Shown piece by piece: positions 30,901 through 56,856 of a stretch of DNA of 56,856 nucleotides (the stretch's first letter is position 1; every line of letters begins with the position of its first letter). The notes beneath the pieces are model-generated. The model was not told where the DNA came from and did not search any database. It worked only from the letters and a program-made list of their open reading frames with translations. A program made the position numbers and the translations under genes. The DNA is from Octopus sinensis. Taxonomy: Eukaryota. The stretch spans positions 1 through 56,856 of the forward strand of contig NW_021833610.1 in NCBI RefSeq assembly GCF_006345805.1. Direction: 5' to 3'.

Positions 30901-32824
30901 AAACAATACAGTTCCATCATTTAGAAGATCCTTTTATAGACAGGGGGGAACTTTCTAGGTGCAATACCATGGCCATTGATGACCGAGGTGGGGTGGGGGT
31001 GGGTCTTTAGCCCCCATTAATATACAATAGTATTTAATAAGAACTAACTTTGTTTCTCCCTTGTTGAACACATTTCTTTTCTTTCTTCTTTGTTCAGTTA
31101 AATAATAATAATAATAATGATAATAATAATAATAACAATAATAATAATAATAATAATAATCGTTTTAATGTTTCCTTTTCCATGTTTCAGGTGGAATTGG
31201 TTGAGGCAAATTTTTCTATGTCTAGGTGACATTCCTATCACCCACCCCTACACCAAGGAAGCTAATATTGCCCCATGGCCAGACATGTTTTTATTGTAGA
31301 CTGGAAACGGATGACACTGCTTGTATGATGGTGATCCTTGTTTACAAATATCATGTGATTAAAAGACAAACAGGTACTAACACAGTCACACACACACACA
31401 CAGCCATATATTTATATATCATCATCATTATCATCATCGTTTAGCGTCCGTTTTCCATGCTAGCATGGGTTGGACGGTTCAACTGGGGTCTGTGAAGCCG
31501 GAAGGCTTCATCAGGCCTAGTCAGATCTGGCAGTGTCTCTACGGCTGGATGCCCTTCCTAACGCCAACCACTCCGTGAGTGTAGTGAGTGATTTTTACGT
31601 GCCACCCACACAGGTGCCAGACAGAGCTGGAAAACGGCCACGAACGGATGGTGCTTTTTATGTGCCACCGGCACGGGGGCCAGGCGAGGCTGGCAACGGA
31701 CACGAATGGATGGTGCTATATATATATATATATACAAAATAAGGAAATGGAGAAATACATCTTAATCAATAATCAACTACCAGATAATACCCAATCAATT
31801 AAGTTATCCTTGACAAATACCTACCGACTATACGTAAGAAGATTAAGCTTAGCCTTTGGAAAAATACTCAGGGTGCATTAGATTGGTTCTCTACCATTAA
31901 GGTTAGTAATAATAGTAGCAATAAATTTATCCAATTGGATATACAAAATTACTACTCCTCCATTAACCCTATTATATTAAATCAGGCTTTAATTTTTGCT
32001 AGGAGACACACCAACTTAAGTATGGGGGAGGTAAAGGTTATCTTAACAGCTAGAAAAACATTAATCGAATTTGACAACAAATTATGGGCTAGAAAAGACA
32101 CTCCTGATTTATTTGACATCACCATGGGTTCGCCGGATTCAGCGGAAGTGATGGATTTGGTAGGGATGTATTTACTCGATAACCTAAATCGGGAATTCCC
32201 TGAATTAAAGGGCGGCCTATATAGAGACAATGCTTTGTTTCTAATTAAAAACACATCTAATAGAAGGCTAGATTTACTGAAAAAACGACTGCATAAAGTT
32301 TTGGCTTATCTATAATTATTGAAAACGAAAATTACTCTGTCAATTATTTAGATGTCAATTGCAACCTTACTAATGGGATACATGAACCTTATATTAAACC
32401 TAATTCTAACTTAGTATATATAAACTACTCTAGCAATCACCCCCGTCAAATTAAAAAGTCACTGGTACATAGCATTAGTCAAAGAATCTCTTATCTATCC
32501 TCAAACTGGGACATATTTAATAAGCATTGTGAAAGATATAATACGGCATTGCTTAATGCAGGCTACACAAGTAAAATTAGGTATATACCCAATAATAATC
32601 TTTCGAATCAAGGTGGATCTATTACTACTAACATAAATGAATTCCAAATTGACAATAGTAACTGTAGAATAAAGAACAATGGCAATAATGCTAGTTTTGG
32701 TACTTTTAGAGCTGTTGACCTTAGTTTAAATAACTTAGCGCACAATATTGATATTAATAATACAAATAATAATATGAACAATAGTCATGATATTATATAT
32801 GATAATAGAAAAATTTATTTACGC

Positions 32825-32873
<49 letters not shown>

Positions 32874-38800: not shown

Positions 38801-41663
38801 AATAAACACATATATACAACAGACTGTTAGTGTATTGAGAGAGAAGTTTGGCAGAAGAAGAATTGGATGCAGTCTGTGAGAGAAGACAGTGCTGGTTTGG
38901 TCATGTGATGTGGATGGATGCTGACAGCTCAACAAAGAAGTGCCGTACATTCAAAGTGGATGGAACTTGTGTAAGAGGGAGACCCAGTAAAACAGAGGAC
39001 GAAGTTCTGAAGGAGAACCTCCGAACGGTGAACCTTGTGGATGAGATGACAAAGGACTGAGATATCTGGTGCCTTGCTGTGCTCAAGAAGACCTGACCTC
39101 CACAGCAGAAATGTATCAACTTTATGCTTAGAGAAAATAGGAAGTGTTTAACATTTTGAGTCTACTCTTTGACAGAAAGAATAGAAGAAGAGAGAGAGAA
39201 GAGAAGAAACCCGTGTCAGAGTGTCACTACAAGCTGAAATGATTGGAGGAGGAAGAGGTTGCTGAAGGTGTCAGTGGCTCTGGCAACCAAGGGAGACATC
39301 TATGAGAGCTGACTTGAGGTACGAGTGACAAGGGAGACAACTATGAACTTGGCACGTGTATGTGAGCACACATGTGTATGAGACTACTGTGTATAAGTAT
39401 CTATGCATGTGTGTATGTATGTCCATGCTTTTGGTTTATGTGTGTGTGTATAAGGCTATGCGATGTAACTGTGTGTGCAAGCAAGTGGATGTATATAAAG
39501 CTCTTGTGTGCATGTATACTGTGTGTGTGTGTTCATGCGTGTTGGTACGTACATGTATATGTATATGTGTGTGTGTGTGTCTGTGCACCATAATTTAGTG
39601 TCCATGGCTGGGTGTCCTTCCTGTAGCCAAGTGCCACATGTTTCCAAATGAGGGAATATTTCTCCATGGTCAGACATGTTTTTCATGGAAGACTGGAAAT
39701 GACACAACATCACTTGTGTGATGGTGATGTTCATTTACAACCATCGTGTGCTGTCAACACCTGGCTACTCACCCTCACACACACACACACACATATATAT
39801 ATGTATGTATTACAAAATATAAAGTTATATCTTGAGTGACAACAACACTCAAGATATACGACGGACTGGAAATAGAAGTGCTCCAATGAGCTGTATACAC
39901 TTTTTATAAAAAAGTATATATGTATGTATAAATGATGAGCTTCTTTCAGTTTCTATCAACGAAATCCACTCCCAAGGCTTTGGCCAACCACTGACCTATA
40001 ACAGAAGACACTTGTCCAAAATGCTGTGAGTGGAATTGAACCTGAAACCACGTGATCAGGAAGTTAGCTTCTCAACCACACTTGGATCTAAAAAGAAACA
40101 TTAACTATAAAAAATGGTATTACTAACCTTTCTGCACAATGGCTGCTGCAACACCTCCCATATGTTCCAATCTACCATTTGCAGCATTAACAATAGCATC
40201 TGTGTCCAGAGTCGTGATGTCACCTTCCCTCAACACGATTTCACAGTTCTTATAATTAACTTTAACTATTTCTTCTGTTTCACTTTCTAAATTTGAATTT
40301 AATGATATTATACTCTCAGATTTCTTCTGCATTTCACACAAGAAAGTGTTTCCTTCTTCACTTTCCAGAAATTCTTGAAATCTAAACATTTCAAAGTTTT
40401 CTTCTTGTGATCTGATATCTTTTATTAAATTTTCTATAAATATTTCCATTTTCTTAAATTGCTCTTGTGTTCCTTCCAGGTGTAACTTATTATCTTTGAG
40501 ACACACATTCTTAATTTTATTTTTCGCACCAAAGTCATTGATTTCTTGTTCTTTGAACTCTTTAAGAAAGAGGAAATGTGCATGAGTCATCGATATATAA
40601 GGTTCATCAGTTAAAGATTGCTTAAAGTTATCAATTTTGCTTTTTATATCATTAACTACAGCATCAACAGCGACAAGAGAATTTTCTCCAATAAAATGGG
40701 AATCTGGAAACTCTTCTTTTAGTTTTTCAACAAATGTCAGCCACTTTCCATAATTTGGAGTATCCTTAATTTTGTGTACAAAATCCAGTGTGTTGGCGAA
40801 AAAAGTTTCTTTCATAATTTCTTCCAAAAGTGAAAGATGTGTTTTATCACTTGCATAAAGTAATACTGAATCACCATCACCCGTTTCCCATGAACCAATA
40901 CATTTCTTGTTTCTCAGTTTGTCATCAAGATATTCTTTCACTGGTTTTTTATTTATGATCATTCCAGTATTTAAAGGCAAACACAATTCAGATTTAACAA
41001 TTGACTGAAGAATTTTATACATATTCTTGAGACAAGTAGCTAATTCGGAATACTGGCCTTCAAAAATAACTTTGTTACCATGAATTCTGACTTGTAGATC
41101 TTCAGATTGTCTTTCTGCCTGCTCAAAAAATCTGAGACCAGATAGAATACGCCTTCCATGAATACTTAAATCATCCTCATATATCGATCTAAGATTATCC
41201 AAAAGTCTGTTTTTCATTTTAATCACATTACTTTTATCAAATCCAAAAATATGAACTTTATGATATTGGATATCAAAATAAAAATATTTCTTATCATCAT
41301 CACTTTTAAATGTTCTAACAACGTCTTCAAAAATATTGGTTGGAACATCAATGATTTCAACAGTAATGGAATTTAATAAGTCTTCCAAACATTGTTCAAT
41401 TTGCTTCAAATTTCCTTCAGAATAACTTAATTTCAGTTTATTAAACTTGGAATCTTTCCATATTACTTCAGCCCATTTCTTTAATTGGTCATTAACTATG
41501 ATTTTATGTCTTTTTAAGAAAGTCAGATGGAACTTGGAAGGTAGTAAATAGTCATGGAATTGCTGTCTTGAAATGGTATTTTCTTCTGATGGTTCCCTCA
41601 ATGGTTGAACATCTGACTTCACATTTTGCAGTATATGATCTCTGCTACAATCGTCCAGCACAA
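2613..41663 (-). CDS. PARP14: PARP14-like macro-PARP, multi-exon, partial at both ends: large exon, macrodomain 1, macrodomain 2A, macrodomain 2B, linker
   Basis: Twelve exons join in one open frame through canonical AG/GT sites: 40128-41663, 34822-35070, 30611-30790, 24921-25057, 24411-24638, 23358-23585, 17782-17836, 14837-14973, 14330-14557, 10644-10871, 8029-8083, 2613-2794. Macro motifs: GDIT..DAIVNAAN..GGVAAAI, HAVGP, IAIPALSTGTFG, VIINST..GAIS, AFPILGAG. WWE and catalytic domains are not in the window, so PARP14 versus PARP9/15-like orthology is inferred from architecture. Confidence 0.85.
3165..4700 (-). mobile_element. Nested 3' fragments of RTE-clade LINEs with (CAT)n-tailed 3' UTR pieces
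   Basis: YGHVMHVDKDSCVKKCRSLTVDGTCGRGRPRKTWDKV and SSGGGCTESIVAR match the longer copies at 20.2-22.5, 35.7-38.5 and 48.9-52.2 kb; boundaries approximate. Confidence 0.85.
5030..5235 (+). mobile_element. SINE-like repeat
   Basis: tRNA-like head (gagttcaaatt) followed by a gtaccagt...ctggggttgatgtaatcgactta core, whose reverse complement recurs in the 41.8-42.4 kb array. Confidence 0.6.
5900..7050 (-). mobile_element. RTE/BovB-like LINE 5' fragment (APE endonuclease), degenerate
   Basis: YNIDLAA, SGSSYTFFWKG, LGYFNAVVG, MNSNGLQL, CSTDHKLIRAKL; similar to 45.6-48.4 kb; boundaries approximate. Confidence 0.8.
7545..7740. repeat. A-rich low-complexity tract with recurring aatacaaaaatat
   Basis: Direct inspection. 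Confidence 0.6.
8029..8083 (-). CDS. PARP14: Cassette B exon 4 (55 nt, phase 0 to 1)
   Basis: ttctaacag|AAATTT ... TCAG|gtaaat; encodes KFDEYFQGNTTGSSAASS. Confidence 0.85.
9540..10520 (+). mobile_element. RTE LINE endonuclease-region fragments
   Basis: CLQEVRWRG...IFWESNSDGVGGV matches ORF 53513-54322; heavily decayed. Confidence 0.75.
10644..10871 (-). CDS. PARP14: Cassette B exon 3 (228 nt)
   Basis: tttttttag|ATTCTG ... AAG|gttggt; encodes ILANLTQIITTCLETAERMGAKSLAFPILGAGTLKYP... Confidence 0.92.
11000..13380 (+). mobile_element. HERO-like (restriction-like endonuclease class) non-LTR retrotransposon, 5' truncated, frameshifted, endonuclease core deleted
   Basis: FRPISLLNVEGK, QKAGIPGIPGCIEH, WLDLANAYGSVPH, GCTISV, AFMDG, YDALPS..NL.RW, and C-terminal FPIEVGCRGF...ASHWIW. 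Absent from the paralogous intron at about 23.7 kb. The clade call is from recalled motif similarity. Confidence 0.85.
14330..14557 (-). CDS. PARP14: Cassette B exon 2: macrodomain 2B core (228 nt)
   Basis: ttttgtag|GTTGAT ... TTA|gtaagt; encodes VDVIINSTNKHLQLNDGSISKFILNAAGPQIQVEC... Confidence 0.92.
14837..14973 (-). CDS. PARP14: Cassette B exon 1 (137 nt, phase 1 to 0)
   Basis: cttttcag|GGACC ... TCT|gtgagt; encodes TSLSNPSPLHPQQKAASVIPRTNVALTKNPGIKINLMIDSISNAS. Confidence 0.9.
15027..16934 (+). mobile_element. Non-autonomous Helitron carrying a PIF1-like helicase fragment
   Basis: 5' A|TC at 15027; 3' GCCC...GGGC hairpin then CTAG|T at 16931-16935; ORF 16334-16855 has AILAPRN, YPIEVLNS..PGLPPH.LKLKVGAPIML and CNGTRL. 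Confidence 0.9.
15736..16085. repeat. About 165-bp tandem repeat, 2.1 copies, inside the Helitron
   Basis: aagttttttaggacgaa starts at 15736, 15901 and 16067. Confidence 0.9.
17782..17836 (-). CDS. PARP14: Cassette A exon 4: last helix and linker (55 nt, phase 0 to 1)
   Basis: ttttaacag|AAATTT ... TCAG|gtaaat; encodes KFKEYFQQMSADGSDVSS; paralogue at 8029-8083. Confidence 0.85.
18630..18785 (-). mobile_element. tRNA-derived SINE; related copies near 30350-30490, 34270-34400, 39940-40082, 45380-45445 and 56500-56608
   Basis: The minus strand reads ggctgtgtggttagggagc...gggttcagtcccactgcgtggcac (A/B-box-like); the shared body is visible between copies. Confidence 0.75.
19100..20150 (-). mobile_element. 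Mariner transposon relic
   Basis: N-terminal QCQWWFHKF..GNYSLEDNPHSGR; C-terminal HQDNVWPHTA and HPPYSSDIAPSDY (mariner YSPDLAP motif); stops and frameshifts; TIRs not resolved. Confidence 0.88.
20161..22530 (+). mobile_element. RTE-clade LINE, 5' truncated (RT to 3' UTR), inserted at the mariner 5' end
   Basis: NYKGITLL, QFGFVPGKSTTDAIF, FVDMEKAFDRVP, YADD relic, GRPRKTW; ends in a (GAT)n tail at about 22509-22528. Confidence 0.92.
22122..22316. repeat. 65-bp tandem repeat, 3 copies, within the RTE 3' UTR
   Basis: tgcctgattgttcccatgc starts at 22122, 22187 and 22252; no unique spacers. Confidence 0.92.
23358..23585 (-). CDS. PARP14: Cassette A exon 3: macrodomain 2A C-terminal half (228 nt, phase 0 to 0)
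   Basis: tttttttag|ATTCTG ... AAG|gttggt; encodes ILANLTQIITICLKNTERMGVKSIAFPILGAGTLKYP...IKDVYFTVYPQD. Confidence 0.92.
24411..24638 (-). CDS. PARP14: Cassette A exon 2: macrodomain 2A core (228 nt, phase 0 to 0)
   Basis: ttttgtag|GTTGAT ... TCA|gtaagt; encodes VDVIINSTNKSLQLNIGAISKSILNAAGPEIQVEC...TKGYNLKCKKVFHLVLPPW. Confidence 0.92.
24921..25057 (-). CDS. PARP14: Cassette A exon 1: linker and first strand of macrodomain 2A (137 nt, phase 1 to 0)
   Basis: ttttcag|GAACC ... TCT|gtgagt; encodes TTSFNASLLGPQQKAAPMTPRTNVASGENAGIKIQLMIGSISNAS. Confidence 0.9.
25898..27892 (-). mobile_element. CR1-like LINE, 5' truncated, one frameshift in RT, poly(A) tail
   Basis: NYRPISLTSHISKVME, QHGFRPGRSC, YLDFAKAFDKLDH, GVPQGTVLGPLLF, YADDTK, DYCSQLWSP; flanked by (TA)n on both sides. 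Confidence 0.92.
27937..30453. repeat. Segmental duplicate, copy 1 (paralogous to 54934-56608)
   Basis: Colinear unique sequence, RTE fragment and SINE are shared with the 55-56.6 kb region. Confidence 0.92.
28250..29900 (-). mobile_element. RTE LINE 3' fragment with internal deletions
   Basis: RT and C-terminal sequence homologous to 49.5-50.8 kb; (CAT)n tail at about 28250. Confidence 0.88.
30611..30790 (-). CDS. PARP14: Macrodomain 1 C-terminal exon (180 nt, phase 1 to 1)
   Basis: ttattacag|GTACTTTTGG ... AGAG|gtagga; encodes TFGIPIEEGTECIVTTIKNYL...IKHICLIDVQKEVIRAF. Confidence 0.92.
31745..33940 (+). mobile_element. Penelope-like element (RT, Asn-rich inserts, Cys-rich linker, C-terminal GIY-YIG endonuclease), frameshifted
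   Basis: DIQNYYSSI, ITMGSP.SAE..DL, GLYRDN, NYLDV, SNHP; LWLIIPY..IKT block; CNCR..C...C..KEVVY..YIG..KQRLNYH..F; W.LK; CSLC..E. Confidence 0.88.
32825..32872 (+). repeat. (AAT)16 microsatellite encoding poly-Asn in the PLE frame
   Basis: Direct inspection. Confidence 0.95.
34822..35070 (-). CDS. PARP14: Macrodomain 1 middle exon (249 nt, phase 1 to 1)
   Basis: tttgcag|GTGGGTTT ... ACAG|gtaag; encodes GFGIQAESNRIMKE...KCKAIIHAVGPIW...IAIPALSTG. Confidence 0.93.
35745..38550 (+). mobile_element. RTE-clade LINE, 5' truncated, RT ORF 36046-37164 largely open
   Basis: GVHQGSVLSPLL, LLYADDLAL, GRGRPRKTW; 3' UTR ends near 38550. Confidence 0.93.
38840..39110 (+). mobile_element. RTE LINE 3' coding fragment
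   Basis: WFGHVMWMDADSSTKKCRTFKVDGTCVRGRPSKT. Confidence 0.8.
40128..41663 (-). CDS. PARP14: Large exon (1536 nt, phase 1 to 1): probable KH-like repeat region plus N-terminal part of macrodomain 1
   Basis: The 512-aa ORF 40123-41661 ends IVLREGDITTLDTDAIVNAANGRLEHMGGVAAAIVQKG. Donor AAG|GTTAGT at 40128/40127; acceptor ttttactttttcataatttag|TT at 41664/41663. The 5' boundary is less certain, and KH-like identity is inferred from PARP14 architecture. Confidence 0.9.
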
Positions 41664-41833
41664 CTAAATTATGAAAAAGTAAAAAGATAAAATCATTTCG
41701 TTGGTGAGGGATTAGGGGTGAGCTGGGGAGTTTAGTGGGTAAAGACAGAAAAGTATTTGAAGACAGAAAAATATAATCAACATTTAACAGACACTAAGTA
41801 AACACTATCTCTATTAATTATAATAAATACTAG

Positions 41834-42371
41834 AAACATCACTGGAATTTTGGTTTTAAATTTTGGCACAAGGCCAGCAATTTCAGGAGAGTGGCTAAGT
41901 CAATTACATCAACCCCAGTGCTCAGCTGGTACTTATTTTATTGACCATAAACATCACTGAAATTTTGGTTTCAAATTTTAGCACAAGACCAGTAATTTCA
42001 GGAGAGAGGCTAAGTCAATTACATCAACCCCAGTGCTCAGCTGGTATTTATTTTATTGACCATAAACATCACTGGAATCTTGATTTCAAATTTTGGCACA
42101 AGGCCAGCAATTTCAGGAGAGTGGCTAAGTCAATTACATCAACCCCACTGCTCAACTGGTACTTATTTTATTGACCATAAACATCACTGAAATTTTGGTT
42201 TCAAATTTTGGCACAAGGCCAGCAATTTCAGGAGAGTGGCTAAGTCAATTACATCCACTCCAGTGCTCAGCTGGTATTTATTTTATTGACCATAAACATC
42301 ACTGGAATCTTGATTTCAAATTTTAGGACAAGGCCAGCAATTGCAGGAGAGTGGCTAAATAGATTACATCG
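41834..42371. repeat. 115-bp tandem array, about 4.7 copies, SINE-derived
   Basis: aaacatcact starts at 41834, 41949, 42064, 42179 and 42294. Confidence 0.95.
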
Positions 42372-42619
42372 ATCACATTGCAAATGCAAGAGGATGAAAG
42401 ACATAGTCATCCCTGTCAGAATTTGAACATTGAGTGTGAAGATGGATGAAATACCGCTAGCCATTTCATCCGACATGCCCGCCCATCACCATTATCACTG
42501 AGATAATAAGAAACATCATCATCATTTAGCGTCTGTTGTCCCTGGTGATATGGGTTGGACAGCTTGACCAGGGCTGGTAATGTGGGAGACTGCAACAAAT
42601 GCCAGTCTGGTTTGGAGTG

Positions 42620-43790
42620 GTTTTCTATGCCTGGATACTTTGCGATCGTCAACCCATGCCATGCTGAGTTTGTATGTCTTCTCTTGCAGTTCCTGATAAT
42701 TAGATTCGCAATAAAGAGCTGATCCTTCGTTTCCTGACTTCTTTTACGGTACCCTTTCTGTTTAATGGGTAGCAGCCCACTTTTTCCCAAGCATCTGTAC
42801 AGTTCAGCAGCCAAATTACCTGACATTAGTTTCCATGTTGCATCCAAGTTGGATGTAACATTTCCCTTTCCAGGATCCTTGGAACGTAACAATGTCTTTC
42901 CCTTTGTCTTCCAGCTGGGTACTGCACCTTCCTGCAAGCACTCATCTAGCTGTTGCACTCTCCTTTGATGGATCCTTCTCAGCTTCTTCATCCAATAATC
43001 TGGGACCCCATCCAGTCCTGGGCTCTTCCAATTTGGGAATTTTCTTAACTGCTTTTTTTTATCATTTCTGTAGTTATTTTTATGTCTTTTTTACCTTCTA
43101 TATTTCTTAACCTATCTTGGATTTCATGCAGCCACTCTGCTTCATTATTATCATCTGCAGATTGGTACCAGATCTCTCTCCAAAATGCCCTACTTTCCTC
43201 TGCTTCTGGTATCATTGTTATGTGTAATTGCCCATCCAGTTCCTGAAACAGTTACTTCTGATATGCTTCTAACAATCTGTTCTGCTTGAATTATTTTCTT
43301 CTATTGTCATATCTTTCTTGTTTTGCTTTGATTGCTCCAACTCTTTGTTTCATTTCTTCCAATATCTCATCATACAATTTATCTCTTATTCCATCTGTCC
43401 TTTCCAGCATCATTCTTATACTTTCATTCTGCAATTCCCCTCTTCTCAATCTATCAACTTGTCCTAAATGCCTTTGTTCCTTACAAATTCCTCTACACCA
43501 GAACGGTTCTTTACGTTCTATTTGTTCTTTCCTTTTCAATCCAATTCTATCTGCAGCAACAGTTGCTGCACCCCAAATAATCTTGTGAGTTTCAGTGATA
43601 TTTCTCGTATGGAACAGCCCAAGAACTGAATCTATCTTTCTGGTTTCAACCTTGATCTTGCATTGGTCAATGTACCTCAGATTATGGGGGGGAAGGGTCT
43701 TGATCCTGGTCTTCTCAAATATATCCTCTCTACGTCTTGTTGGGCATCACCGTATTATTGGGATACAGCTCTTCCTATTACTTCTGCTTA
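42620..43790 (-). mobile_element. R4/Dong-like non-LTR retrotransposon fragment
   Basis: VPSWKTKGKTLL.SKDPGKG..SN, WKLMSG, LLPIKQKG.RK.SQETKDQL.I..LI..NCKRRHTN; EPFWCRGI. Confidence 0.8.
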
Positions 43791-44219
43791 ATTTGTGGAA
43801 GGGCATCAGGCTGTAAAAATCCTGCCAAAACAGACACAGAAGTGCCTGGCTAGCTCCTGTCAAACCGTCCCAACCATTCTAGCATGGAACATGGATGTCA
43901 AACAATGATGATGATTTTATTAGTTTGATCAATATTTCAACTGTTTGCTTCTCTTTGTCAAGTTCTAATGAAAACATGATGAATAGAAATTTAAAAATTG
44001 TAGAAATTCAAATTCAAAACTTGGAACGAGGAGATCCTGCATTCCCAGTTTGACAAAATGATGTCATCAGTCTTCAATTTTCAATTGTATAACTGGCTAA
44101 AAGAAAGAAAAACAACAAGAGAAAAAAGAAAAAGGAGAAGAATATATAGTCAGTTTTGTGTGAATATTATGAAATTCCTCTGTCATTTTATTCATCCCTT
44201 CATGGTGTAGATGTTAATA

Positions 44220-45100
44220 ACTCACAAAACATATCTGTCCCTGTGCATTTTGAGGACTGAAAGTGTAGCAGATTCAGAATATTTTCTGAGAATATGCACT
44301 TTCAATTTTTTTTGAAAATTGCAGCCATTTGATGTAAAATGTTCAGCAAGTTCTGTTGAATTTTTATCATGCCTGACATCATATCTGTGCCCATGAAGTC
44401 TTTTGTTTAATTGTTCTGTTGTACAACCAACATAAATCATGTTGTGTTTCATGTATTCTGCCACATACACCAAATTTGGATCTCTACATGTCCCACCTTC
44501 TGAATAAATCATAACATTTCTGTTATGATTCCTGATGGAATTCACTTGACTCATGTTGTTGCACAATGAACAGGGCTTAACTCTCTTGCGACTGTTTTTC
44601 AAGATATGATGTTCAGAAAGTCCAGTGTTAGAGTTCTTGGAATTAAAGCTAGTGGTTAATATTTATCTTATATTCTTAATACATTTGTTCCTTTCCCAAA
44701 AGGAAAGGATTTTCAATTGCCTGCGTAAACCACAGAAGTCATTCACTTTCTATCACCCACCCAGAAATGGTTTACTCCTAGAAAGATGACTAAAAGTTAT
44801 GAGTTCCTCACATGAACATTCTAAACCATTTTTATCACGGAATAGGTTCCATATTTTAAGTGAAGAATTTGAGCAAAACCCAAAAAGTAGTCACAGATCT
44901 AATGAAAGTGAAACTCTGAAAAGCACTCTCCTAAGAAAATCCATCATACGAGTGAATAAATTTATCTAAACTAAACCTTTCACCAGACGATGTCCCTGAC
45001 TTGGTGCTGGGATTGAGTTTCTGCCCAAAGACTAAGAATTTTGACAAGAATAAAATCCAGCTCAAGGGCTATCCACTGTCACAAGCTGAAGGAATGTTTT
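44220..45100. mobile_element. Penelope-like element fragments in inverted arrangement: GIY-YIG on minus (about 44220-44690), ORF N-terminus on plus (about 44710-45100)
   Basis: Minus: KPCSLC...TCRDPNLVY...IYVGCTTEQLNKRLHGHRYD. Plus: INLSKLNLSPDD...GLSFCP-type motif. Confidence 0.75.
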
Positions 45101-45469
45101 TTTTATAACATACAAGCAGCGATACTTGGTATTGCTCGGGATTAAAATGGCATAGTTTTTGCTGTTTTACTTGTTTCAGTCATGTGAATGGCCGTGCTGT
45201 AGCACCACCTTTAAACAAACAAACAGACCCAAGGATTTATTATTTCTAAGCATAGTACTTATTCTGTTGCTGTCTTTTGCCGAACTGCTAAGTTACAGGG
45301 ACCTGAACACAACAACATCATTTGTCAAGCAATGGTGGGGCTACAAACACAGATATACACACAAATATACATATCTATACGACAGTCTTCTTTCAGTTTC
45401 CATGTGCAAAATCCACTCGCAAGGCTTCGTTGGTCTGAGGCCATGATATATGCAAGCACACACACACAC

Positions 45470-45471
<2 letters not shown>

Positions 45472-45518
<47 letters not shown>
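45472..45518. repeat. (TA)n microsatellite; others include (TG)n 15661-15729, (AAT)n 31101-31160 and (TG)n 27912-27937
   Basis: Direct inspection. Confidence 0.95.
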
Positions 45519-45519
<1 letters not shown>

Positions 45520-45619
45520 CAAACCAAAGAGTCCCCATTCACTACACCAGCAGTACACTTTCAAACAGCATGCTTAAGTTCTTCATGCTGAATACATGCT
45601 CTCTCAAAAGTGTTGACCC

Positions 45620-48420
45620 CCATCCTTAACCTGCTTCCTCCATCCGTGGTGATGACAGTCATTGCTCTCTCAGTCAGTCTCCTATTTATCACAGGTTTTT
45701 AACGAGGACTTTACACAGTCCTTAAATTGTAGCCTTGGTTTCTACCGAGGTCTCTTTCCATTCACAAGTTCCCCATATAGCATCTGCTTAGGGATCCTGC
45801 AATCCTTCATTCTAATAAGGTGTCCAGTCCAACATAACTGCCGCTTGTGTACCATTGCCTCAATACTCAAGATATCAACTGTCCTCATGACCAGTGTGTC
45901 TGTAGTTTTTAAGGTCCAGCCAACATTCAGAATATGTTTGAGATATATCTGATGAAAGTGTTCAAGGACCCTTACATGACATTTGTACAGAGTCCATGTC
46001 TCATGAGTAAAGCAGTGATGTTAGTACACATGCCTTGTAATTCCATGCTGGGACCAGACACAGGACTGAGGAGACCAGAAGGAATCAGTTGTTCTCTGCA
46101 GCCTAAAAGATATTTCAGGCAGACAAATTTATTTACCACGTTCAGAATTGTTCCTTCAACCAATATATCTGGTTCCACACATGGATTACCTGGTGCAGGC
46201 TGCAACATTACAACAACCTTGTCCAGTCTAATACTGAATCCAAGTGCCTTGCAACAAGCAGAATTACGATTCATAAGTATTTGTATGTCATTCACTGTAT
46301 GAGTGACTAAGTCACAGTCATTTGCATAATGGAGGTCATGAATAAGAGACAGGAAAACGTTTCAGTTGGGGCAAGGATGTCACCCTGCTTGACACCATTC
46401 TCTACAGGAAGGGGTCCCACCATGTCAGCACCAACATTGACCCAAGCCTTCATCCCATCATGAAATTATTTAATTATAGATACAAAGTGATCTAGACATC
46501 CAAGTTTGCCAAGTATTTTCAATAGAAAAGCCCTATTCACAGTATCAAAGGCCTTTGTTAAATCAATGGATACCTGGAGAAGATCCATATTCTGCTCATA
46601 GCACTCCTCCTGCATCTGTAGTGCTGTAAAAATCATATCCATTGTCCCTCTACCAGATCAGAAGCCACATTGAGATTCAGATAGGACATCATTTACGAGA
46701 CACCCATTCAGGCGGGTAAGAAGAATATTTGCCAGAACCTTGCCAGCAGCTCATAGCAGAGCAAAACCTCTGTAGTAATCACACATTGTTCTGGTTCCTT
46801 TTACTATATAGAGAGGAAGAATAATCGCATGCCTTCCAGTCCTTAGGCATTGCACCATCCCTCCAGACTGCACTAATAAGTTCATGAAGGGACTGTGTGA
46901 TGTAATCACCACCAAATCGCAAGACCTCAGCACAAATTCCATCCTTTCCAGGTGCCCTACCAAGATTCAGTTTACTTATTGATGTCATTACTTCAACTAT
47001 TGAGGGTGTGGAATTTAAGGAGCCAATGATGGGTCTTTCTTGCATAGTATCAATCACTGTTACATCCACAACTGACTCATGGTTTAGGAGTTCAGAGAAG
47101 TGTTTGATCCAGCAACCTGTGATTTCTGTTGATTTAGTAAATAGAGTGGAAGACTCCTTGGAAAGGAAAGGGGATGATGTGGAGCTCTTAGGCCCATAAA
47201 CATGCTTCATAAGATGGTAAAGCTTCTTGCTGTCATTTGCATCAGCCTGAACATCACGAGCAAGATCCTCCCACCAAGTGTTCTGCATCTTCCTGAGAGA
47301 CTGCTGCAGTAGTGATTTTACACTGCTACAGTGGGCAAGTGCTAGATTTCACTGAACATCTGGAAGTCCTCTGCGTAACAATACACTGTAGGTATGGCAC
47401 TTTACCACCAATAGTCGCTGAACTTCAGCATCATTTTCATGAAACCAGTCTCTGTGTCAGGCAGTAGAATATTCCAGTGTTTCAGCAGCACATTGAAGAA
47501 TATGGTCTCGAAAACCTTCCCATGCTGCAGTATTTTCAATGCTGGAACAAGCGAGTCTGAAGCTCTTTCCTCAACATCACACCATTATATATCTTGTGGA
47601 CATTCAGATGCCAAGGAATGCTGAATGGTCCTCTTCTCTCTTTCACTCTAATCATCATCCAAAACTTTGCTCACACCAGACTGTGATCTGTCAGGCATTC
47701 CATTTCATGAAAGGACGTGGCATTACAAATGTCATTGATGTCACGCTTGCAGGTGATGAAATAATCCTATCGGTGCCAAACTTTAGACCTTGGATGCATC
47801 CACGTTGTTGTGTGATCTCCTTTGTGCAAAAAGTGAGTGCTTGCGATGTAAAGTCCATGTTTATCGCAAAGCTCCAGCAGCATGAGACCATTGCTATTCA
47901 TTTTCCCTACTCCAAAATGCTCTAGAGAGTTCCATGTTTGCCGGTCTGTTCCAACCCTGGCTTTGAAATCTCCCAATAGAATGACTCAGAATTGAGGATT
48001 TTCCTAAGTATGGCTCTCAGCTGGGTATAAAAAATAGCTTTATCTTCATTGCAACTTGTCAAAGCAAGTGCTTAGGCATTTACTAGAGTAGCAAACCACC
48101 CACCTTTCAGGTGCAATCTTACAGTCATTAGACGTTCATTTATAGGAACAGGAAGCACTTCCAACTTCTTCAGGATATCAGATCGAACTGCTAAGCCAAC
48201 ACCAGCCTCTCTGTGCTCCTCCTTCCAAAAAAAGAAGGTGTATCCACTTCCTACTTCCTCAGGTTGACCACCACCTTCCATACAAGCCTCTGAAAGTGCA
48301 GCTATATCAATGTTATAATGGTTCAACTCACGAGCAACAAGTGTAGTGCATATTTTCAGGCCTCCAATCACTCTTGTTATCCAACAGAATGCAAACATTC
48401 CAACATGAAATGTTCAAGTT
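45620..48420 (-). mobile_element. RTE/BovB-like LINE, near full length, degenerate
   Basis: TLVARELNHYNIDIAALSE, GDFKARVG, NSNGLMLLELC, TTWMHPRSKVWH, RAPGKDGICAEVL, QLCWTGHLIRM. Confidence 0.9.
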
Positions 48421-48676
48421 CCAACCAGATTTTGTAAATAAAAGTTTCTTTGTTTTTCGAGCACAGGGTGGACATACAGAATACATTCCCTCACTTTAAT
48501 TCTCCTATTCCTTCCTTCTCCTACCTTGATTCAACCCTTGAACTTTTTCAACGGACAATTTCTCCTGCTTTCATCCAATCCGGCGTCAACCCCTATAAAT
48601 AGACATTATTTATCATTATCTTAATGAGCTCCTAGAGAGCAGTCATCGAAAAACTTGTGCATTTTGTTGGGTAATC

Positions 48677-48787
48677 AAATTCCTGGATTTTCCTGAAGAG
48701 AAAGCTGCATAATGGACTCCTTATTCATTCGGAATTAGGGACTTTGCAGACTTCGAAATATATGTCGAAAATAAAATAAAGGAATTT
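48677..48787 (+). ncRNA. Type I hammerhead ribozyme with minimal palindromic stem III (Penelope type)
   Basis: Core CTGAAGA 48693-48699, GAAA 48755-48758, GTC 48764-48766. Stem I ATTTTC/GAAAAT plus AAATTCC/GGAATTT; stem II closed by G48700-C48754 with CTGCA/TGCAG; ATATATGT is self-complementary with two G-U pairs. Confidence 0.75.
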
Positions 48788-48875
48788 TGTTAAATCTTCG
48801 TTCAGCTCCATTCTTTCCTATACTATGTATATATATATATATGTATATATATATATGTATATGTATATATATGTA

Positions 48876-51800
48876 TCATCATCATCGTTTAACGTCCATT
48901 CTCCATGCTAGCATGGGTTGGATGGTTCAACCTGGGATGTGGGAAGCCAGAAGGCTGCACCAGGCTCCAGTCTTATCTGGCAATGTTTCTACAGCTGGAT
49001 GCCCTTCTTAACGCCAACCACTCCGTGAGTGTAGTGGGTGCTTTTTACGTGCCACCTGCACAGGTGCCAGGCGAGGCTGGCAACGGCCACGGTCGGATTG
49101 GTACACTTTACATGCCACCGGCACAGAAGCCCGTCGAGGTGGCACTGGCATACAGCCACAATTTGGATGGTGCTTTTTATGTGCCACCGGCACGGAAGCA
49201 AGTCGAGGCGGCGCTGGCATCGGCCACGATTCGGATAGTGCTTTTTACATACCACCAGTCCAGAGGTCCTGGCATCTGCCGGGTGCCAGTCATAGGATTG
49301 ATTCAATTTCGATTCCGATTTCGATTTTAATTTCACTTGCCCCAACAGGTCTTCGCAAGCAAAGGGGGGTTGGCATGGGAGCCTGTCGTCGGATGAGGTT
49401 CGATATCAACTTCGATTGCCTCAACAGGTCTTTGTGTGTCGAAGGGAGGAAAGGCATGCATAAGTGGGCTGCACAGCATATTTCCAAAGGTCTCGGTCGC
49501 TGGTCATTTCCTCAGTGAGGCCTAAAGTTCAAAGGTCGTGCTTCACCACCTCGTCCCAGGTTTTCCTGAGTCTACCCCTTCCACGGGTTCCCTCAACTGC
49601 TAGGGATTGACACTTTTTCACACACCTATCTTCATCCATTCTCGGCACATGACCATACCAGCGCAATCGTCTCTCTTGCACACCACAACTGATGCTTCTT
49701 AGGTCCAACATTTCTCTCAAGGTACTAACGCTCTGTCGAGTATGCACACTGACATTACACATCCATCGGAGCATACTGGCTTCATTCCTCGCGAGCTTAC
49801 GCATGTCCTCAGCAGTCACGGCCCATGTTTCATTGCCATGTAGCATGGCTGTTCGTACACATGCATCATACAGTCTGCCTTTTACTCTGAGCGAGAGCCC
49901 TTTAGTCACCAGCAGAGGTAAGAGCTCCCTAAACTTTGCCCAGGCTATTCTTACTCTAGCAGTTACACTTTCAACGCACCCACCCCCACTACTGACATGG
50001 TCACCTAGATAACGGAAGCTATCAACTACTTCTAGGTTTTCCCCCTGGAAAGTAACGGAAGTTGTTTTCTGCAGATTTTCAGAGTTTATTGCTCCTGAGC
50101 ATCTGCCACATACAAAAACTATCTTCCCAGTTAGCCTTCCTTTGACATTGCTGCACCTCTTATGTGTCCATAGCTTACACTGGGTACATCTTATAGAGTT
50201 TCTACCTACACCTTTTCTACAGATTGAGCAGGGCCATCTCCCTGAAGACATTTGTGATTTGTCTACCTTCCTACTTATTAGGACTTTGGTTTTAGCTAGA
50301 TTGACTCTAAGGCCCCTCGATTCTAAACCCTCCTTCCACACCTGGAACTTCTCCAGTTCTGATAGTGACTCAGCAATTAGAGCAAGATCGTCAGCATAGA
50401 AGAGCTTCCAGGGGCAACCTGTCTTGAATTCCTCCGTAATTGCCTGGAGGACTATGATAAATAGGAGGGGGCTGAGTACTGAACCCTGGTGGACCCCAAC
50501 CTCTACTTTGAATTCTTCTGTGTACATGTTGCCAACCCTAACCTTACTTACGGCATCCCTGTACATGGCTTGCACAGCCCTCACCAGCCATTCATCTATC
50601 CCTAGTTTCCTCATTGACCAGCAGATAAGGTATCGGGGGCCCTGTCAAAGGCTTTCTCCATGTCAACGAAAGCCAGGTACAGGGGCTTATCTTTGGCTAG
50701 GTATTTCTCCTGCAGCTGTCTCACCAGAAATATGGCATTAGTGGTGCTTTTCCCTGGCATGAAACCAAACTGCATCTCGTCCAAGTTGACTCTCTCCTTA
50801 ATAAGTTGGGCTATGACCCTCTCTGTAACCTTCCTTACCTGATCCAACAGCTTGATACCTCTGTAATTATTTGTACCTAGGTCGTCTCCTTTACCTTTGT
50901 AGCAGTTGACTAGTATGCTGCTACACCAGTCATTGAGTATGACTCCTTCGTGTATCACCTGGTTAACTATACGGGTGACTAGGTTATAGCCGACACTGCC
51001 TGATATTTGGAGCATCTCTGCAGTAATTCCTGATGGGCCTGGGGCTTTCCCTGTCTTCATGCTTCTAATTGCCTTAACTACCAAAGAATTGTTAACTTGG
51101 ATGGCTAGTCCCTCTGTTGGGTTGACAATCGGCAGACTCTCTTTATCCCATTCATTTTCTTTATTCAGCAACCTTTCATAGTGGCATCTCCAAACCTCTC
51201 TCTTTGCATCCTCATTTAGCGCAAGTGAACCATCATTCATGCAGACACATTTCTCTCCTACCACATCACGATTCTCTCTCACACACTGTCTTGCAACGCG
51301 AAATACCTCAAGTCTTTCATCCTCATGGTGCAGAACATTGGCAAATTTTTTCTTATCCGCTTCCCCTCTGGCTAAATAAACCTGTCTCCTAGCTTCCCTT
51401 CTTGCTGTCTGATACAATTCCCTGATACCACCGTTCTTCCAGTCCCTCCAAGCCTGTTTCTTTTGTCTAATAGCCCTGTCAACCACATTGTTCCACCACC
51501 ACGTTACTCTAGTTCGAGATGGGACTTTGCTCCATCCACAGATCTGGTCAGTGGCTGTCAGCAGATTGTCCCATAGAAATCTCCAGTTGTCTTCCACATT
51601 AAGTGAAAGTATATCCCCTTCTATTTCGTCAAAGGCTTCGAGTAGTATGTCTCTAAATCTCTGTCCATTTGCAGGATCTTTAAGCTCCCAGACCCTTCTC
51701 CTCCATGCTGGTCTTCTTCTGGGCAACCATTTAGCTCTGATCCTGAAGTCGCTAACTATTAATCTATGTTGAGGAGTACATTCTTCGCCTGGAAAGGTTT

Positions 51801-52250
51801 TGGCATTTATAAGCAGCCCTCTTTCCCTCTTTCTGGTGAGGATGTAGTCAATCTGGCTAGTGTCTGCCAGAACGGTAGGTGACTAGGTGAGAGGTGGGTT
51901 TCCTGAAGTTGGTATTGCAAACCATAAGGTCATTTGCATTGCAGAACTCCAGCAGCCTGGTTCCCTCCTCATTTCGAGAGCCAAAACCGTAGCCTCCATG
52001 AACGCCATGGAAGCCCCCGACATGCCGTCCAACATGTCCATTGAAATCACCTGCCACAAAGAGAAGGTCACTGTCATTTGTCAACGAGGTAGTCCGCAAT
52101 AGGGTGTCGTAGAATTGGTCTTTCTGTCCTTCCGGTAGCCCTGGTTGAGGGGCATATGCTGAAATGATGGTAGCTGACCTATGTTGAAGCACTAATCTAA
52201 TCTTAAGTACTCTGTCACTTACTCTGACTACCTCGATTACCTTATCTCCT
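48876..52250 (-). mobile_element. RTE-clade LINE, nearly complete (endonuclease part, RT, 3' UTR, (CAT)n tail)
   Basis: ORFs 51857-52192, 50611-51726 and 49529-50614 with AGDFNGHVG, NYRGIKLL, GVHQGSVLSPLLF, YADDL; few frameshifts. Confidence 0.95.
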
Positions 52251-52259
52251 CGATTATAT

Positions 52260-53280
52260 GTATATGTATATATATGAAAATTCTAAATATACATAATTGA
52301 AAAAGAAAATAATACTTCAATAAATAAATACTATAAAATTAAATAAAAAACACAAAGCTATTACAAGTCATTAAATTGTAACCAAAATAAGAAATGTTTC
52401 AAATATAGACAAACTCCTTACATAAGCTAATATAATAAATATACATGTGTAGTATCTATAGATTTCATGTTACAAACTATAACAAAATAGACTAAATATC
52501 AAATAATATAATACCTAATTAACTTCAATTTAGTATTACAAATACAAATTCCTCTATATATCAATAAATAATATAATATATTGTATAACATATATATATA
52601 TATATTATATATATATATATATAATATATATATATATAATAGCAAGAATAATATGTTAATGGAAAGTAAGAAACCTATCAACCCCAAAGTAAAGAAAGGT
52701 GCTAAAATATTCAAACCAAAGAACAATACCCTATGAAGATGTACAATCACAATCACCAGTCCTCTACCAAACCAGTCAATTACATTAACAATAATAAAAA
52801 CGATCAAAGTCAAAATAATAGCAAAAACTAACTAATATTGATAAGCAAACTAAATTACTAAGTTCAACGATTCTGGTTAATCTATCTAGATTTTAAAAGG
52901 ATAAACATCTAATTAATCAACTCAATTAATTTCATTCATGAAAATACAATCAAAAGTTTGAAAAAGTACAAATACACTAAAATCCATTATATAAACTCGT
53001 TATATTAATATCCATGTATAAAATCTATAGATTTAATATATCACACGATAAAAAGTTAAACATAAATATTATATTAAAATAAAAACTAGTATATTTTAAA
53101 AAATTGTACTAATAGAAAATTAGAATTATATAAAAAGAAACTTTATAATTTCTTCAAAAGAAATGTTTTAAGTACTACTATATATAATGTGAAATATAAT
53201 GTTAATTATTTAGATGTTAACATTAATTTAGTAACGGGTAAAACCCAACCATTCCATAAAATTACTGAAAATCTTAGACT
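52260..53280 (+). pseudogene. Extremely AT-rich Penelope-like RT relic
   Basis: TNRKLELYKKKLYNFF...VNYLDVNINLVTGKTQPFHK at about 53108-53260 aligns by eye to SNRRLDLLKKRLHKV...VNYLDVNCNLTNGIHEPYIK at about 32257-32400. Confidence 0.6.
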
Positions 53281-54360
53281 TTGCACCATCCACAGATCTG
53301 GTTGGTGGCCCTTAGCAGGTTGTCCTGTAGGAACCTCCAGTTGTCTTCTATATCATGTGAAGCTACATCCCCTTCTATTTAGTCAAAGGCTTCGATTAAT
53401 ATGTCTCTAAATCTCTGTCCATCTGCAGGATCTTTAAGTCTCCAGACCCTTCTTCTCCTTGCTGGTTGTCTTCTGGGCATCCATTTAGCCCTGATCCTGA
53501 AGTCACTAACTACTAGTCTATATTGTGGAGTACATTTTCACCTGGGAAGGTTTTGGCATTTATAAGCAGCCATCTTTCCCTTTTTCTGGTGAGGATGTAG
53601 TCAATCTGACTAGTGTGTCTGCCAGAGCGGTAGGTGACTAGGTGGCTGGCAGGTTTTCTGAAGTTAGTATTGCAAACCATAAGATCATTTTCATCACAGA
53701 ACTCCAGCAGCCTGGTTCCCTCCTCATTGCAGGAGCCAAAACCGTAGCCTCCATGTATACCATGGAAGCTCCTGACATGTTGTCCAACATGTCCATTGAA
53801 GTCGCCAGCCACAAAGAGAAGGTTCCTGTCATTCGTCAATGCGGTAATCTGCAAGAGGGTGTCATAAAATCGGTCTTTCTGTCCATCGGGTAGCCCTGGC
53901 TGAGGGGCATAGGCTGAGATAATGGTTGCTAACCCATGATGAAGCATTAATCTAATCTTAAGTATTCTGTCGCATCCTCTGACTACCTCAGTTACTTTAT
54001 CTGCCCATTTATCCACAAGAAGTTTACCCACACCCCCAACCCCGTCAGTGTTCCTTGCCCAGAAAATCTTGTACCTGTGTTCTTTGCCTGTGAGGAACCT
54101 AGCAGAACCTCCTCTCCACCTTACTTCTTGGATGCAGCACATATCGACGCATCTCCATTCAAGCATCTCAACAATCTCACCAGACCTACCTTTCAGTGTG
54201 CAGACGTTGAGAGTGCCAACCCTGAGGGTGTGGGAGGTATGGGCCCTAGAGACCCTGGGACGGGGGTTAGTGGCGTCATGTACCTGAAAAGAGAGCTCGC
54301 ATTTGGCAGAATTCATAAGCAAACAATGATCTTAATAAGTTCAACCTGCTTACACTAAAC
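53280..54360 (-). mobile_element. RTE LINE 5' portion (APE endonuclease, ORF 53513-54322)
   Basis: RVGTLNVCTL, CCIQEVRWRG, ISAYAPQ, AGDFNGHVG, SQIDYIL. Confidence 0.93.
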
Positions 54361-54933
54361 TATCATGTTTTGCACTGTATTATCACTACCTTATATAGTA
54401 GGGGTGGTGTTGGTGTAAGGCCTTTAGGAGTTCATGGGAGACAAGCAAAGGAAGACGAGATAGGGACTTTCGGTACAGGTGGAAAGGGTGGGAGGGCTTA
54501 GGTACCTCCAGGAACTGGCAACCATGGGCTAGGAATTAAGAGACAGAAAAGGCCGACAGGTAGATAGGCAAATAGGGTAGGAATTAAATAGACAGAATGA
54601 TAGCCGATAAGTGAGGGAGAAAGACAAGATGAGCGACAAAATTAAAGACGAAAGACTGTGTGATCGTGTGATAAATTTTCATGAGTGAAAGACTATGTTG
54701 CAAATTACGGAAGTGTGTGACCTAGGGTTTAAGACGAAAAGACATCAACAGTAAGACGGAAAGACAGAATAGGAAGAAAATAATAAGGGTCTATGATGAT
54801 AATACTCGCAAAAATACAATGAAACGAGGAGCAAGTTGAAAGCTTAAAATCTCTTATCTGAAATTTTTCATCCTCTGAGAATCGTGTTTACAGCCAGGGT
54901 TAATCAGTATATATATAAATATGTATGTATGTA

Positions 54934-56608
54934 TATATGGTGCATTTTAAAACGTTTCTTGTAATTTTTCTTTCATGTATATATCACTCATATGGCAGTG
55001 ATGTCTGCTTCACACAGTTTACCTGCTTACCACATCACATGACTGAGGCTGATAATCATGTGATAAGTAATTTCTAACAGGTTAAGCTGTTCAAGGAAAG
55101 AAACTTGGTTATTCAGTTGAAGAAGGCTTCCAGTGCTAAATGGCCTCTCGTAAATACTTTAGAGCCAGCCAACGCTATAACTCTTGGTTCGACATTATTG
55201 GACATAAGAAAATAAAACAGTTATTTCAAGAAATTTCTCTTTAAAGAATGATTAGTAGAAAATGTAAATCATCATCATCATCATCATTTAACATCCACTT
55301 TCCATGCTGGCATGGGTTGGATGGCTTGACTGAAAGTGATAGGCTGGAGAGCTGCACCAGGTTCCAGTCAGATTTGACACAGTTTCTACAGCTGGATGCC
55401 TTTCCATATGCCAACCTCTCCAAGAGTGAAATGGGTGCTTTTTATGTGACACCAGCATCGTCTACGATTTCATTTGGTTTGATGAATCTTCTCAAGCATG
55501 GTAAATTGCCAGAGGTCTCAGCAACTTATCATCTCTGTGTGGATCAAAGTTTGTAAGGTACATTTTGTGTAACACTGGCATAAGCCACAACTACAATTTC
55601 ACTTGGCTTGATGGCTCTTCTTAAGCACAGAATATTGCCAAAGGTCTCAGTCACTAGTCATAGCCTCCATGAAGCTCAATGTTCGAGGATCATGCTTCAC
55701 CACCTCGTCCCTCGTCCCTTGGGTCTATCTCTTCCACATGTCCCCTCCACAGTGAAGTCTTCTCTCTTGCACACCACATCTGATGCCTCTTGTGCACCAT
55801 TCCAGATAAGGGATTGGGGGACTCTGTCAAAAGCTTTCTTTATGTCAATGAAGGCCAAGTACAGAGGTTTATCTTTGGCTAGGTACAGAGGTTTATTTCC
55901 CGCAGCTGTCTTACCAGAAATATAATGTCAGTGGTGCTACTCCCTGGCGCAAACCCAAACTGCATCTCGTCTAAACTAACTCTCTCCCTAATTATTTGGG
56001 CTATGACCCTCTCCATGACTTTCATCACCTGATCCAACTATTTGATAACTCTCCAATGTCTGTTTATTTGTGGGGTGTGGGGACACTTTATACCTTCATA
56101 TTAATTAGAATATGAACAATAGTCATGTTTACAATGTATCAGATAAATAATTATAATTATCCTTTGTTAGGGAATCACAGAGTGAGACAAGAATATTTTA
56201 TCAACAGCCATAAATTAAACATCATCATCATCATCCTTGTTTTCACATTCATTGTTCCCTGCTTGCATGGGTGAGATTAGTTTATTGAGGCAGACTTTCT
56301 ATAGCTTGATGCTCTTCCTGATGCTGACCCTCATCTGTTTCCAAGCAAGGTAATATTCCCCCTGGCCAGACGTGGTTTCCACAGAAGACAGGAAACAAAC
56401 AACCTCACTTGTATGCTGGGGATGCTCGTTTACAGCCATCACATGATGTCAAGACAAGAGTACAAACACACACACACACACACACAGTACATATTTGAGG
56501 GTCCCTTGTATCAGTTTCTATCTCCCAAACCAGTTTACACGGCTTTGGTTGGCTCAGGGCCATACTAGAAGATATTTGCTTGAGTTGCCTTACATTGGGA
56601 TTCAACAT
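54934..56608. repeat. Segmental duplicate, copy 2 (paralogous to 27937-30453), with an internal deletion of about 870 bp
   Basis: Colinear identity; junction gtgcaccat-tccagataag at 55800/55801; the match ends inside a SINE where a LINE is inserted. Confidence 0.92.
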
Positions 56609-56856
56609 ACTTACTTGTACTTGTGACGGCATTCACCCAGGGCGGGTTAAGCCGGCTTCTTCTCTGGTCCTAACGGCATCACGAACCATGGCAGGCCACA
56701 CTTGACAGTCCTGTGCGAGGTCACTGGAAATAGCGAGCCATTCATGGTTCCATCTGCACAGACCGATCACCTGACCTGCGTACCTGACAGTTCAGAGAGG
56801 TCCTCCTTTAACGTGGTTGCCCAGGTCTTCACATGCCCGCTCATGCATTTGTGCCA
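56609..56856 (-). mobile_element. 3' end of a different RTE LINE (SR2-like) with a (caagta)n tail
   Basis: Minus strand GHVKTWATTLKEDL...LAQD..VW.AMVRDAV..EAGLTRPG* followed by caagtacaagtaagt. Confidence 0.75.

Follow-up and report, generated by a model that had tools for sequence, protein, structure and literature searches.

Why an intron segment of a PARP14-like gene should lie twice, in the same orientation, in one stretch of octopus DNA, and what stands beside its second copy, is the question raised by the 56,856-nucleotide stretch of Octopus sinensis contig NW_021833610.1 (hereafter the window). Judged by the similarity of its encoded protein, the window gene is an octopus PARP14-like gene of the antiviral type on the minus strand: the 1536-nt open reading frame (ORF) at 40128-41663 encodes a protein matched solely by octopus 'PARP14-like' proteins, the best being O. 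vulgaris P0001 (87%). Unless another strand or locus is given, the features named below lie on the minus strand at window positions. At the DNA level the arrangement is almost certainly a tandem segmental duplication, and the repeat would be its distal end, inside the PARP14-like gene on the minus strand. The locus would then read, in gene order, RRM exons, 46 kb, a first module of large exon, macro1 middle exon and macro1 C-terminal exon (L-M1mid-M1C, module 1), ~18 kb of retroelements, a second L-M1mid-M1C module (module 2), macro2a, macro2b, WWE and the ADP-ribosyltransferase (ART) exons.

The repeated intron segment and the module beyond the window

Comparison of the window with itself by blastn indicated that 54922-56608 is a direct copy of 27925-30453 at 92-95% identity, which bears out an initial annotation that had reported, from the letters alone, a repeat of 27937-30453 at 54934-56608. 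Two collinear, direct matches make up the pair: 54922-55801 with 27925-28780 (92.3% including gaps, 95.2% over aligned bases, E = 0) and 55801-56608 with 29654-30453 (95.1%, E = 0); when only aligned bases are counted, the two copies are 95.2-95.6% identical. Copy A (27902-30453) is the matching intron segment 3′ of the window's own macro1 C-terminal exon and includes an old fragment of a long interspersed nuclear element (LINE) at 28730-29905. Copy B (54902-56608; 92-95% to 27902-30453 by blastn) belongs to the upstream module, where it forms the 5′ part of the 'Y' intron, the one that follows the macro1 C-terminal exon; that upstream exon sits past the right end of the window. The offset of 26,997 given in the initial annotation holds for the left part of the pair, and that of the right part was measured as 26,155, because copy A holds 873 extra bases (28781-29653). 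These bases are an inner part of the old LINE fragment, which is 77% identical to the LINE at 49660-50862 and of which copy B retains only 55802-56052; their absence is therefore an internal deletion in copy B. A (TA)n(TG)n microsatellite forms the left end of the homology (27903-27940, counterpart 54907-54938) and is likely the distal breakpoint region. The pair is collinear across several distinct repeat fragments as well as unique sequence, and other copies of the same repeat families within the window reach only 75-83% identity; it is therefore a segmental duplication and not a chance pairing of transposon nests.

Sequence to the right of the window was read from L001, an 85-kb locus of O. 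vulgaris chromosome OX597814.1 (215.88-215.97 Mb) that was retrieved via P0001. Window positions 49962-56856 correspond to L001 85122-78220 in reverse orientation at ~99.2% identity, the 6.9 kb differing by 38 mismatches and 7 small indels; L001 therefore shows what lies right of position 56856, and the window sits directly downstream of P0001, in O. vulgaris or a species very close to it. The sequence of copy B is also present there, at L001 78468-80176. The end of the match at 56609 had been ascribed to a LINE insertion, and this was confirmed. The stretch 56609-56856 translates into the C-terminal end of a reverse-transcriptase ORF and represents the 3′ end of a LINE in gene-sense orientation; the full insert of 3,315 bp (L001 75153-78467) carries frame-shifted APE-like endonuclease and reverse-transcriptase ORFs, is bounded by a 12-bp target-site duplication, ATGTTGAATCCC (window 56597-56608, second copy L001 75141-75152), and so shows both the coding capacity and the duplicated target site of a LINE insertion. 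It breaks copy B 172 bp 3′ of the upstream macro1 C-terminal exon, and homology to copy A picks up again on its far side (window 30442-31133 with L001 75152-74456, 89.5%). The insertion had further been placed in the middle of a short interspersed nuclear element, and this part did not stand: within ~290 kb of octopus sequence the site is matched solely by paralogous introns, the only multicopy part nearby is a (TG)n run at 30309-30341, and such an element at the site was rejected.

Beyond the LINE, L001 carries intact counterparts of all three exons of the window module. These are a macro1 C-terminal exon, M1C(1), of 180 nt (L001 74801-74980), a macro1 middle exon, M1mid(1), of 249 nt (L001 64060-64308) and a large exon, L(1), of 1527 nt (L001 56602-58128), each with AG/GT boundaries and no stop, in the same orientation as the window module, and at ~60.1, ~70.8 and 76.9-78.5 kb, respectively, in extended window coordinates. 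The corresponding exons of the window, mapped by tblastn with family members, are L(2) of 1536 nt (40128-41663), M1mid(2) of 249 nt (34822-35070) and M1C(2) of 180 nt (30611-30790), all with AG/GT boundaries and of phase 1-1, in agreement with the phase-1 M1C donor and phase-1 large-exon acceptor noted earlier. The search beyond 56856 with the module exons, which the initial annotation had proposed, was thus run on L001, and the further macro1 module that it had predicted upstream exists at the DNA level in an independent assembly. Its wider proposal, of one gene carrying tandem large-exon and macro1 modules beside tandem readers, is supported in part.

Exons encoding RRM domains were found only upstream of module 1, at L001 5219-5389 and ~9890-10123, 46 kb before L(1), with 76-90% identity to the paralogue P0005; the RRM3 exon (~234 nt) is of phase 1-1 and ends in a phase-1 donor. 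By tblastn of the window and L001, no RRM, macro2, WWE or catalytic exon was detected between modules 1 and 2, so that the earlier judgement against a complete upstream paralogous gene is upheld. Within the window, tblastn up to E = 20 gave no RRM exon at any position and only noise for RRM, macro, WWE and catalytic exons in 41.6-56.9 kb, extending to 56.8 kb the earlier statement that macro2, WWE and catalytic exons are lacking between 41.7 and 54.9 kb.

Extent, relatives and coding content of the duplicated unit

Eight collinear blocks, comprising exons and flanking introns, join L001 54835-80176 to window 43799-27902. What was duplicated begins ~2.1 kb before the L acceptor and ends ~2.7 kb past M1C. 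The downstream copy of this unit measures 15.9 kb; the upstream copy, enlarged by later transposon insertions, measures 25.3 kb. At its 5′ side the unit includes the 3′ part of the intron before the L(2) acceptor (the 'X' intron, 41664-43799), which matches L001 54835-56601 upstream of L(1); the two X-intron copies are 91% identical beside the acceptor, and the 5′ ~2.1 kb of the unit contains a minisatellite and a retroelement fragment. The retroelement-derived block (42697-43799 with L001 54835-55934) is 98% identical, compared with 91-95% for the rest of the unit, and may be a recent conversion tract. The minisatellite (41834-42370) has a period of 115 bp and 4.7 units, lies ~170 bp upstream of the L acceptor and was found upstream of every L exon examined, including L(1) (L001 55936-56464) and a paralogue at 8.9 Mb, where it reaches ~62 units over 7.2 kb (L003 68834-76049). 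Such an array could promote unequal exchange between family members.

The proximal breakpoint lies inside the RRM3-to-L intron. As to the distal one, the acceptor-proximal part of the Y intron (25059-25886) is 92-94% conserved in distant paralogues and is missing from the spacer, and the breakpoint is therefore inside the macro1-to-macro2 intron. Both breakpoints are intronic to one gene, and no family exon lies between the copies. The spacer itself (43800-54901), between the end of copy B and the duplicated sequence 5′ of L(2), consists of retroelement fragments (reverse transcriptase, APE endonuclease and GIY-YIG), all in gene-sense orientation and without any family exon; its ORF fragments match RVT_1, Exo_endo_phos and GIY-YIG. 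The old LINE fragment is common to the two Y-intron copies only and is absent at the collinear place in the paralogues L002 and L003, and this shared derived marker supports the two Y-intron copies as sisters. Likewise, L(1) and L(2) are 94.2% identical to each other, compared with ~90% to a paralogue. In distant paralogues, identity over the initial ~550 bp of the post-M1C intron (window 30071-30620) is 91-93%, a level close to that of the exons, and at the nucleotide level the family as a whole is therefore young (~10% divergence).

The octopus PARP14-like family is a large expansion, with two clusters on one chromosome. In the second cluster, L003 (O. vulgaris OX597814.1:8913092-9000818) shows, at 14409-77721, M1C and macro2 exons with RRM-RRM-L directly after them, and no WWE or ART exon was detected there between the macro2 and RRM exons; judged by its exon order, this is another partial-unit tandem arrangement with different breakpoints.

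As to what the module encodes, L(2) covers six KH-like units, then a tail of two helices, and the N-terminal portion of macro1. No Pfam match was obtained for the large exon. Its AlphaFold2 model (pLDDT 84) contains six beta-alpha-alpha-beta-beta-alpha units (residues 33-414) followed by a two-helix segment, and the Foldseek matches are to Dim2/Pno1/Krr1, FMRP KH1-KH2, FBP KH3-KH4 and GLD-3 KH; the whole-chain TM scores are low, and only the KH-type identity of these matches and the secondary-structure pattern are usable. On this model the large exon is a row of six KH-like domains, and human PARP14 has six in-line KH domains plus a split KH that encloses the macrodomains (PMC10450202). For macro1, phmmer against the PDB placed human PARP14 macrodomain 1 (MD1; 3Q6Z, E = 1.5e-32) and MD1-MD2 (3VFQ, E = 2.3e-48) first, with MD1 being the best match, ahead of PARP9 MD1 and bacterial MacroD/YmdB-type deacetylases. 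Pfam Macro is found in paralogues at 1e-29, and paralogues also match RRM_PARP14_1 and RRM_PARP14_3. The ADP-ribose-binding motifs NAAN, GGV and STG-x-[FY]-G are kept in both modules. In human PARP14, MD1 is a hydrolase and MD2/3 are readers (PMC10499325, PMC10470015), and by its similarity to the human domain the octopus macro1 is predicted to be an ADP-ribosylhydrolase ('eraser').

Downstream of module 2, tblastn located the remaining window exons: macro2-type domain copy a (25058-24915, 24635-24408, 23585-23358), a linker exon (17839-17780), macro2-type domain copy b (14974-14831, 14557-14336, 10871-10644) and a pre-WWE exon (2780-2589). The WWE and ART exons lie outside the window, to the left; in O. 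vulgaris, the orthologous protein P0135 (94-100% to the window exons) has a Pfam PARP match and runs on into the PARP catalytic region. The macro2-type domains form a tandem duplication of their own (10644-14974 and 23358-25058) with a period of ~10 kb, flanks at 8005-8651 and 17757-18449, flanking DNA of 80-95% identity and exon proteins of ~69-89% identity; the donor of the middle exon of copy b is apparently shifted by 6 nt. Several introns hold further elements. An AT-rich element on the plus strand at 31935-33936 (GC ~31%) has ORFs with a GIY-YIG-like segment and extended runs of Asn; it probably represents a Penelope-like retroelement, antisense inside the macro1 intron. A PIF1/Helitron-like helicase ORF fragment (16334-16855, plus strand) and a long-terminal-repeat retrotransposon gag/pol fragment with a CCHC knuckle (269-1736, minus strand) are likewise intronic.

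One transcription unit or two genes

Both modules would belong to one transcription unit, which could include them in tandem or use them as alternatives, and a tandem duplication with both modules in a single unit has, on the sequence evidence, a somewhat better than even chance of being correct. One unit is most likely because no promoter, start-codon or RRM exon lies between the modules and both ORFs are kept. Every combination of modules would be in frame, and the codon across an M1C(1)-to-L(2) junction would be GTT (Val), which is that of the normal RRM3-to-L junction. That one gene makes use of both cassettes, which differ at 13.5% of residues, is a possibility that we put forward tentatively. 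In tandem, they would give a protein in which ~12 KH-like domains and a pair of macrodomain-1 'eraser' units precede two reader macrodomains; as alternatives chosen by splicing, they would give two versions of the enzyme from one promoter, with different nucleic-acid or ADP-ribose specificity.

Several observations weigh against this single-unit duplication. As to the DNA, the exact junction is buried in 11 kb of retroelements (43800-54901) and not pinpointable, and the sequence of the upstream module comes from a different assembly, 0.55% divergent, rather than from the genome of the window itself. For the L exon and the Y-intron segment the two copies are nearest to each other, but not for the macro1 exons: those of module 1 are nearer to the paralogue L002 (exons L002 9963-10213 and 30378-30559), which lies on the same chromosome 207 Mb away, at 8.7 Mb, than to module 2, with M1C(1) 95.0% identical to that paralogue versus 91.1% to M1C(2), and M1mid(1) 94.4% versus 92.4%. 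This suggests a mosaic history, for which gene conversion between paralogue clusters is the simplest reading, or else a history more complex than a single clean event. As to the transcript, L, M1mid, M1C and RRM3 are all of phase 1-1, so that frame compatibility is automatic and favours no splice partner; it was accordingly dropped as evidence for one gene. A junction peptide made of module 1 macro1 and the start of L(2) gave no match covering >50% of the query among 5.8 billion proteins, a search of poor recall in which P0001 itself was missed, and an L(2) query of a representative library returned P0135 (1402 aa) and no protein with two full L stretches. Sense LINEs in the spacer could supply polyadenylation signals or promoters, and tandem inclusion would leave one orphan half-KH, if the split KH of the human protein holds in octopus. 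The data agree with alternative use of the modules, or with an end of the transcript after module 1, as well as they do with tandem inclusion. Finally, the O. vulgaris annotation splits the modules into two genes, P0001 and the 1402-aa P0135.

This annotation leads to the alternative that survives best, namely two separate genes. The upstream one would be a truncated RRM-KH-macro1 gene without macro2, WWE or ART that ends in the spacer, and the downstream one would comprise L2-M1-macro2a/b-WWE-ART and start from a new or LINE-derived promoter and first exon. Exactly such models are annotated in O. vulgaris; RefSeq models of other paralogues also stop after L or macro1 (P0009, P0012); the spacer holds several sense-oriented LINEs; and vertebrate PARP9 and PARP15 came from partial PARP14 duplication (PMC13224862). 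Both O. vulgaris models, however, are artefactual at their ends, a duplication with two intronic breakpoints makes no promoter or terminator, the first in-frame methionine of L(2) is at about residue 150, and sense LINEs are as common in the bona fide RRM3-to-L(1) intron. Two separate genes thus appear doubtful, though conceivable.

In detail, the P0001 model (from L001 10001-75122) has its start within the RRM3 exon but in the wrong frame; it takes in a spurious exon (L001 67979-68125) and finishes with a tiny terminal exon after a 67-bp intron. The P0135 model (L001 76676 onward) opens with 131 residues encoded by a degenerate, frame-shifted LINE, which is joined to L(2) at its acceptor, and covers the second macro2 copy incompletely. 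A query with the macro2 region of the window for an O. sinensis orthologue with RefSeq models gave no match of at least 95% identity. Transposon orientation was considered as a clue to whether the spacer is intronic or intergenic and was found uninformative, the spacer being all sense and the genuine RRM3-to-L(1) intron also mostly sense (5 sense, 1 antisense).

A further alternative is that one module is a non-functional, decaying relic that is skipped or untranslated, and this is improbable. The modules share 86.5% protein identity and 93.6% of coding nucleotides, with one in-frame 9-nt indel. The Nei-Gojobori rates of synonymous (dS) and non-synonymous (dN) change between them are dS = 0.061 and dN = 0.068, respectively (dN/dS = 1.13), and a ratio of ~1.1 is what a relic would be expected to show, as is the lack of a protein with both modules in the junction-peptide and L(2) searches. 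Against decay, neither module has a stop or frameshift and six of the six splice sites are intact. No stop occurs in 1953 nt despite 125 substitutions, for which simulation under neutrality gave a mean of 5.2 stops and P(no stop) = 0.005, and the single in-frame indel in these 1953 coding bases compares with 14 indels in ~2.5 kb of flanking intron, a rate from which ~13 would be expected. Moreover, changes polarised with paralogous outgroups are symmetric between the lineages (8 synonymous and 30 non-synonymous upstream, 7 and 35 downstream), and the ADP-ribose-binding motifs are kept in both modules. Comparison of the L(1) and L(2) acceptor regions with that of a paralogue did not discriminate, all being intact. 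The lack of stops, the one in-frame indel and the dN/dS of ~1.1 therefore indicate that both modules are kept translatable while their amino acids diverge quickly. Quick divergence of PARP14 macrodomains has been reported in vertebrates (PMC13224862), and a near-neutral to elevated dN/dS would fit the rapid, probably pathogen-driven evolution known for these domains. Lastly, there is a negligible chance that the repeat is an assembly artefact (an uncollapsed haplotype) or a coincidence of transposon nests, since, although the segment is largely transposon fragments, its copies differ by 5-8% compared with 0.55% between the window and L001, the two assemblies agree in layout across 6.9 kb, collinearity of the pair spans unique as well as repeat sequence and reaches into exons, and other copies of the families are only 75-83% identical.

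Comparison with known PARP14 genes and exon shuffling

PARP14 joins the writer, readers and eraser of mono-ADP-ribosylation in one protein and evolves quickly. The present locus, a young partial duplication (~6% divergence) with intragenic breakpoints, offers a natural experiment on the gain of domains versus the birth of truncated paralogues. Expression of both cassettes from one gene would make the product the first enzyme of the PARP14 type in which a KH-macro1 unit is repeated; if there are two genes instead, the locus would record the birth of an ART-less RRM-KH-macro1 protein. In either case, the current octopus gene models at the locus are wrong at their ends and need revision. A search of the literature on PARP14 in octopus found nothing relevant, and what is new here is a young duplication of a KH-array-plus-macro1 block inside its parent gene, beside an independent duplication of the reader macrodomain.

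Vertebrate PARP14 is laid out as three RRMs, KH1-6, a split KH7 enclosing macro1-3, KH8, WWE and a mono-ART domain. The octopus order of RRM, six KH-like units, an MD1-type macro1, macro2-type domain, WWE and ART resembles it. Unlike the vertebrate gene, the octopus locus has the KH-array-plus-macro1 block twice in tandem and its macro2-type domain is also duplicated; it lacks three distinct MD1/2/3 domains, its hydrolase role is predicted from sequence, and the octopus genes are a lineage-specific expansion of many paralogues. PARP9 and PARP15 derive from partial PARP14 duplications, and tandem PARP14-like clusters occur in amphioxus and sponges (Daugherty 2014 and Perina 2014, cited by PMC13224862). 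As in the origin of these two genes, segmental duplications with intragenic breakpoints gave tandem partial copies in octopus, and the macro domains evolve fast (octopus dN/dS ~1). PARP9 and PARP15, however, are separate genes that keep the ART domain, whereas the octopus block has neither 5′ end nor ART and lies inside its parent gene, where its role may be that of an internal domain repeat and not of a new gene.

Classical exon shuffling proceeds by duplication of exon blocks that form symmetric phase 1-1 modules, usually single-domain exons of extracellular proteins. The exons of the octopus unit and RRM3 are likewise all of phase 1-1, and their duplication, skipping or swapping keeps the frame. 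In contrast to the classical modules, the octopus unit is a 16-kb block of three exons that encodes ~650 residues of an intracellular enzyme.

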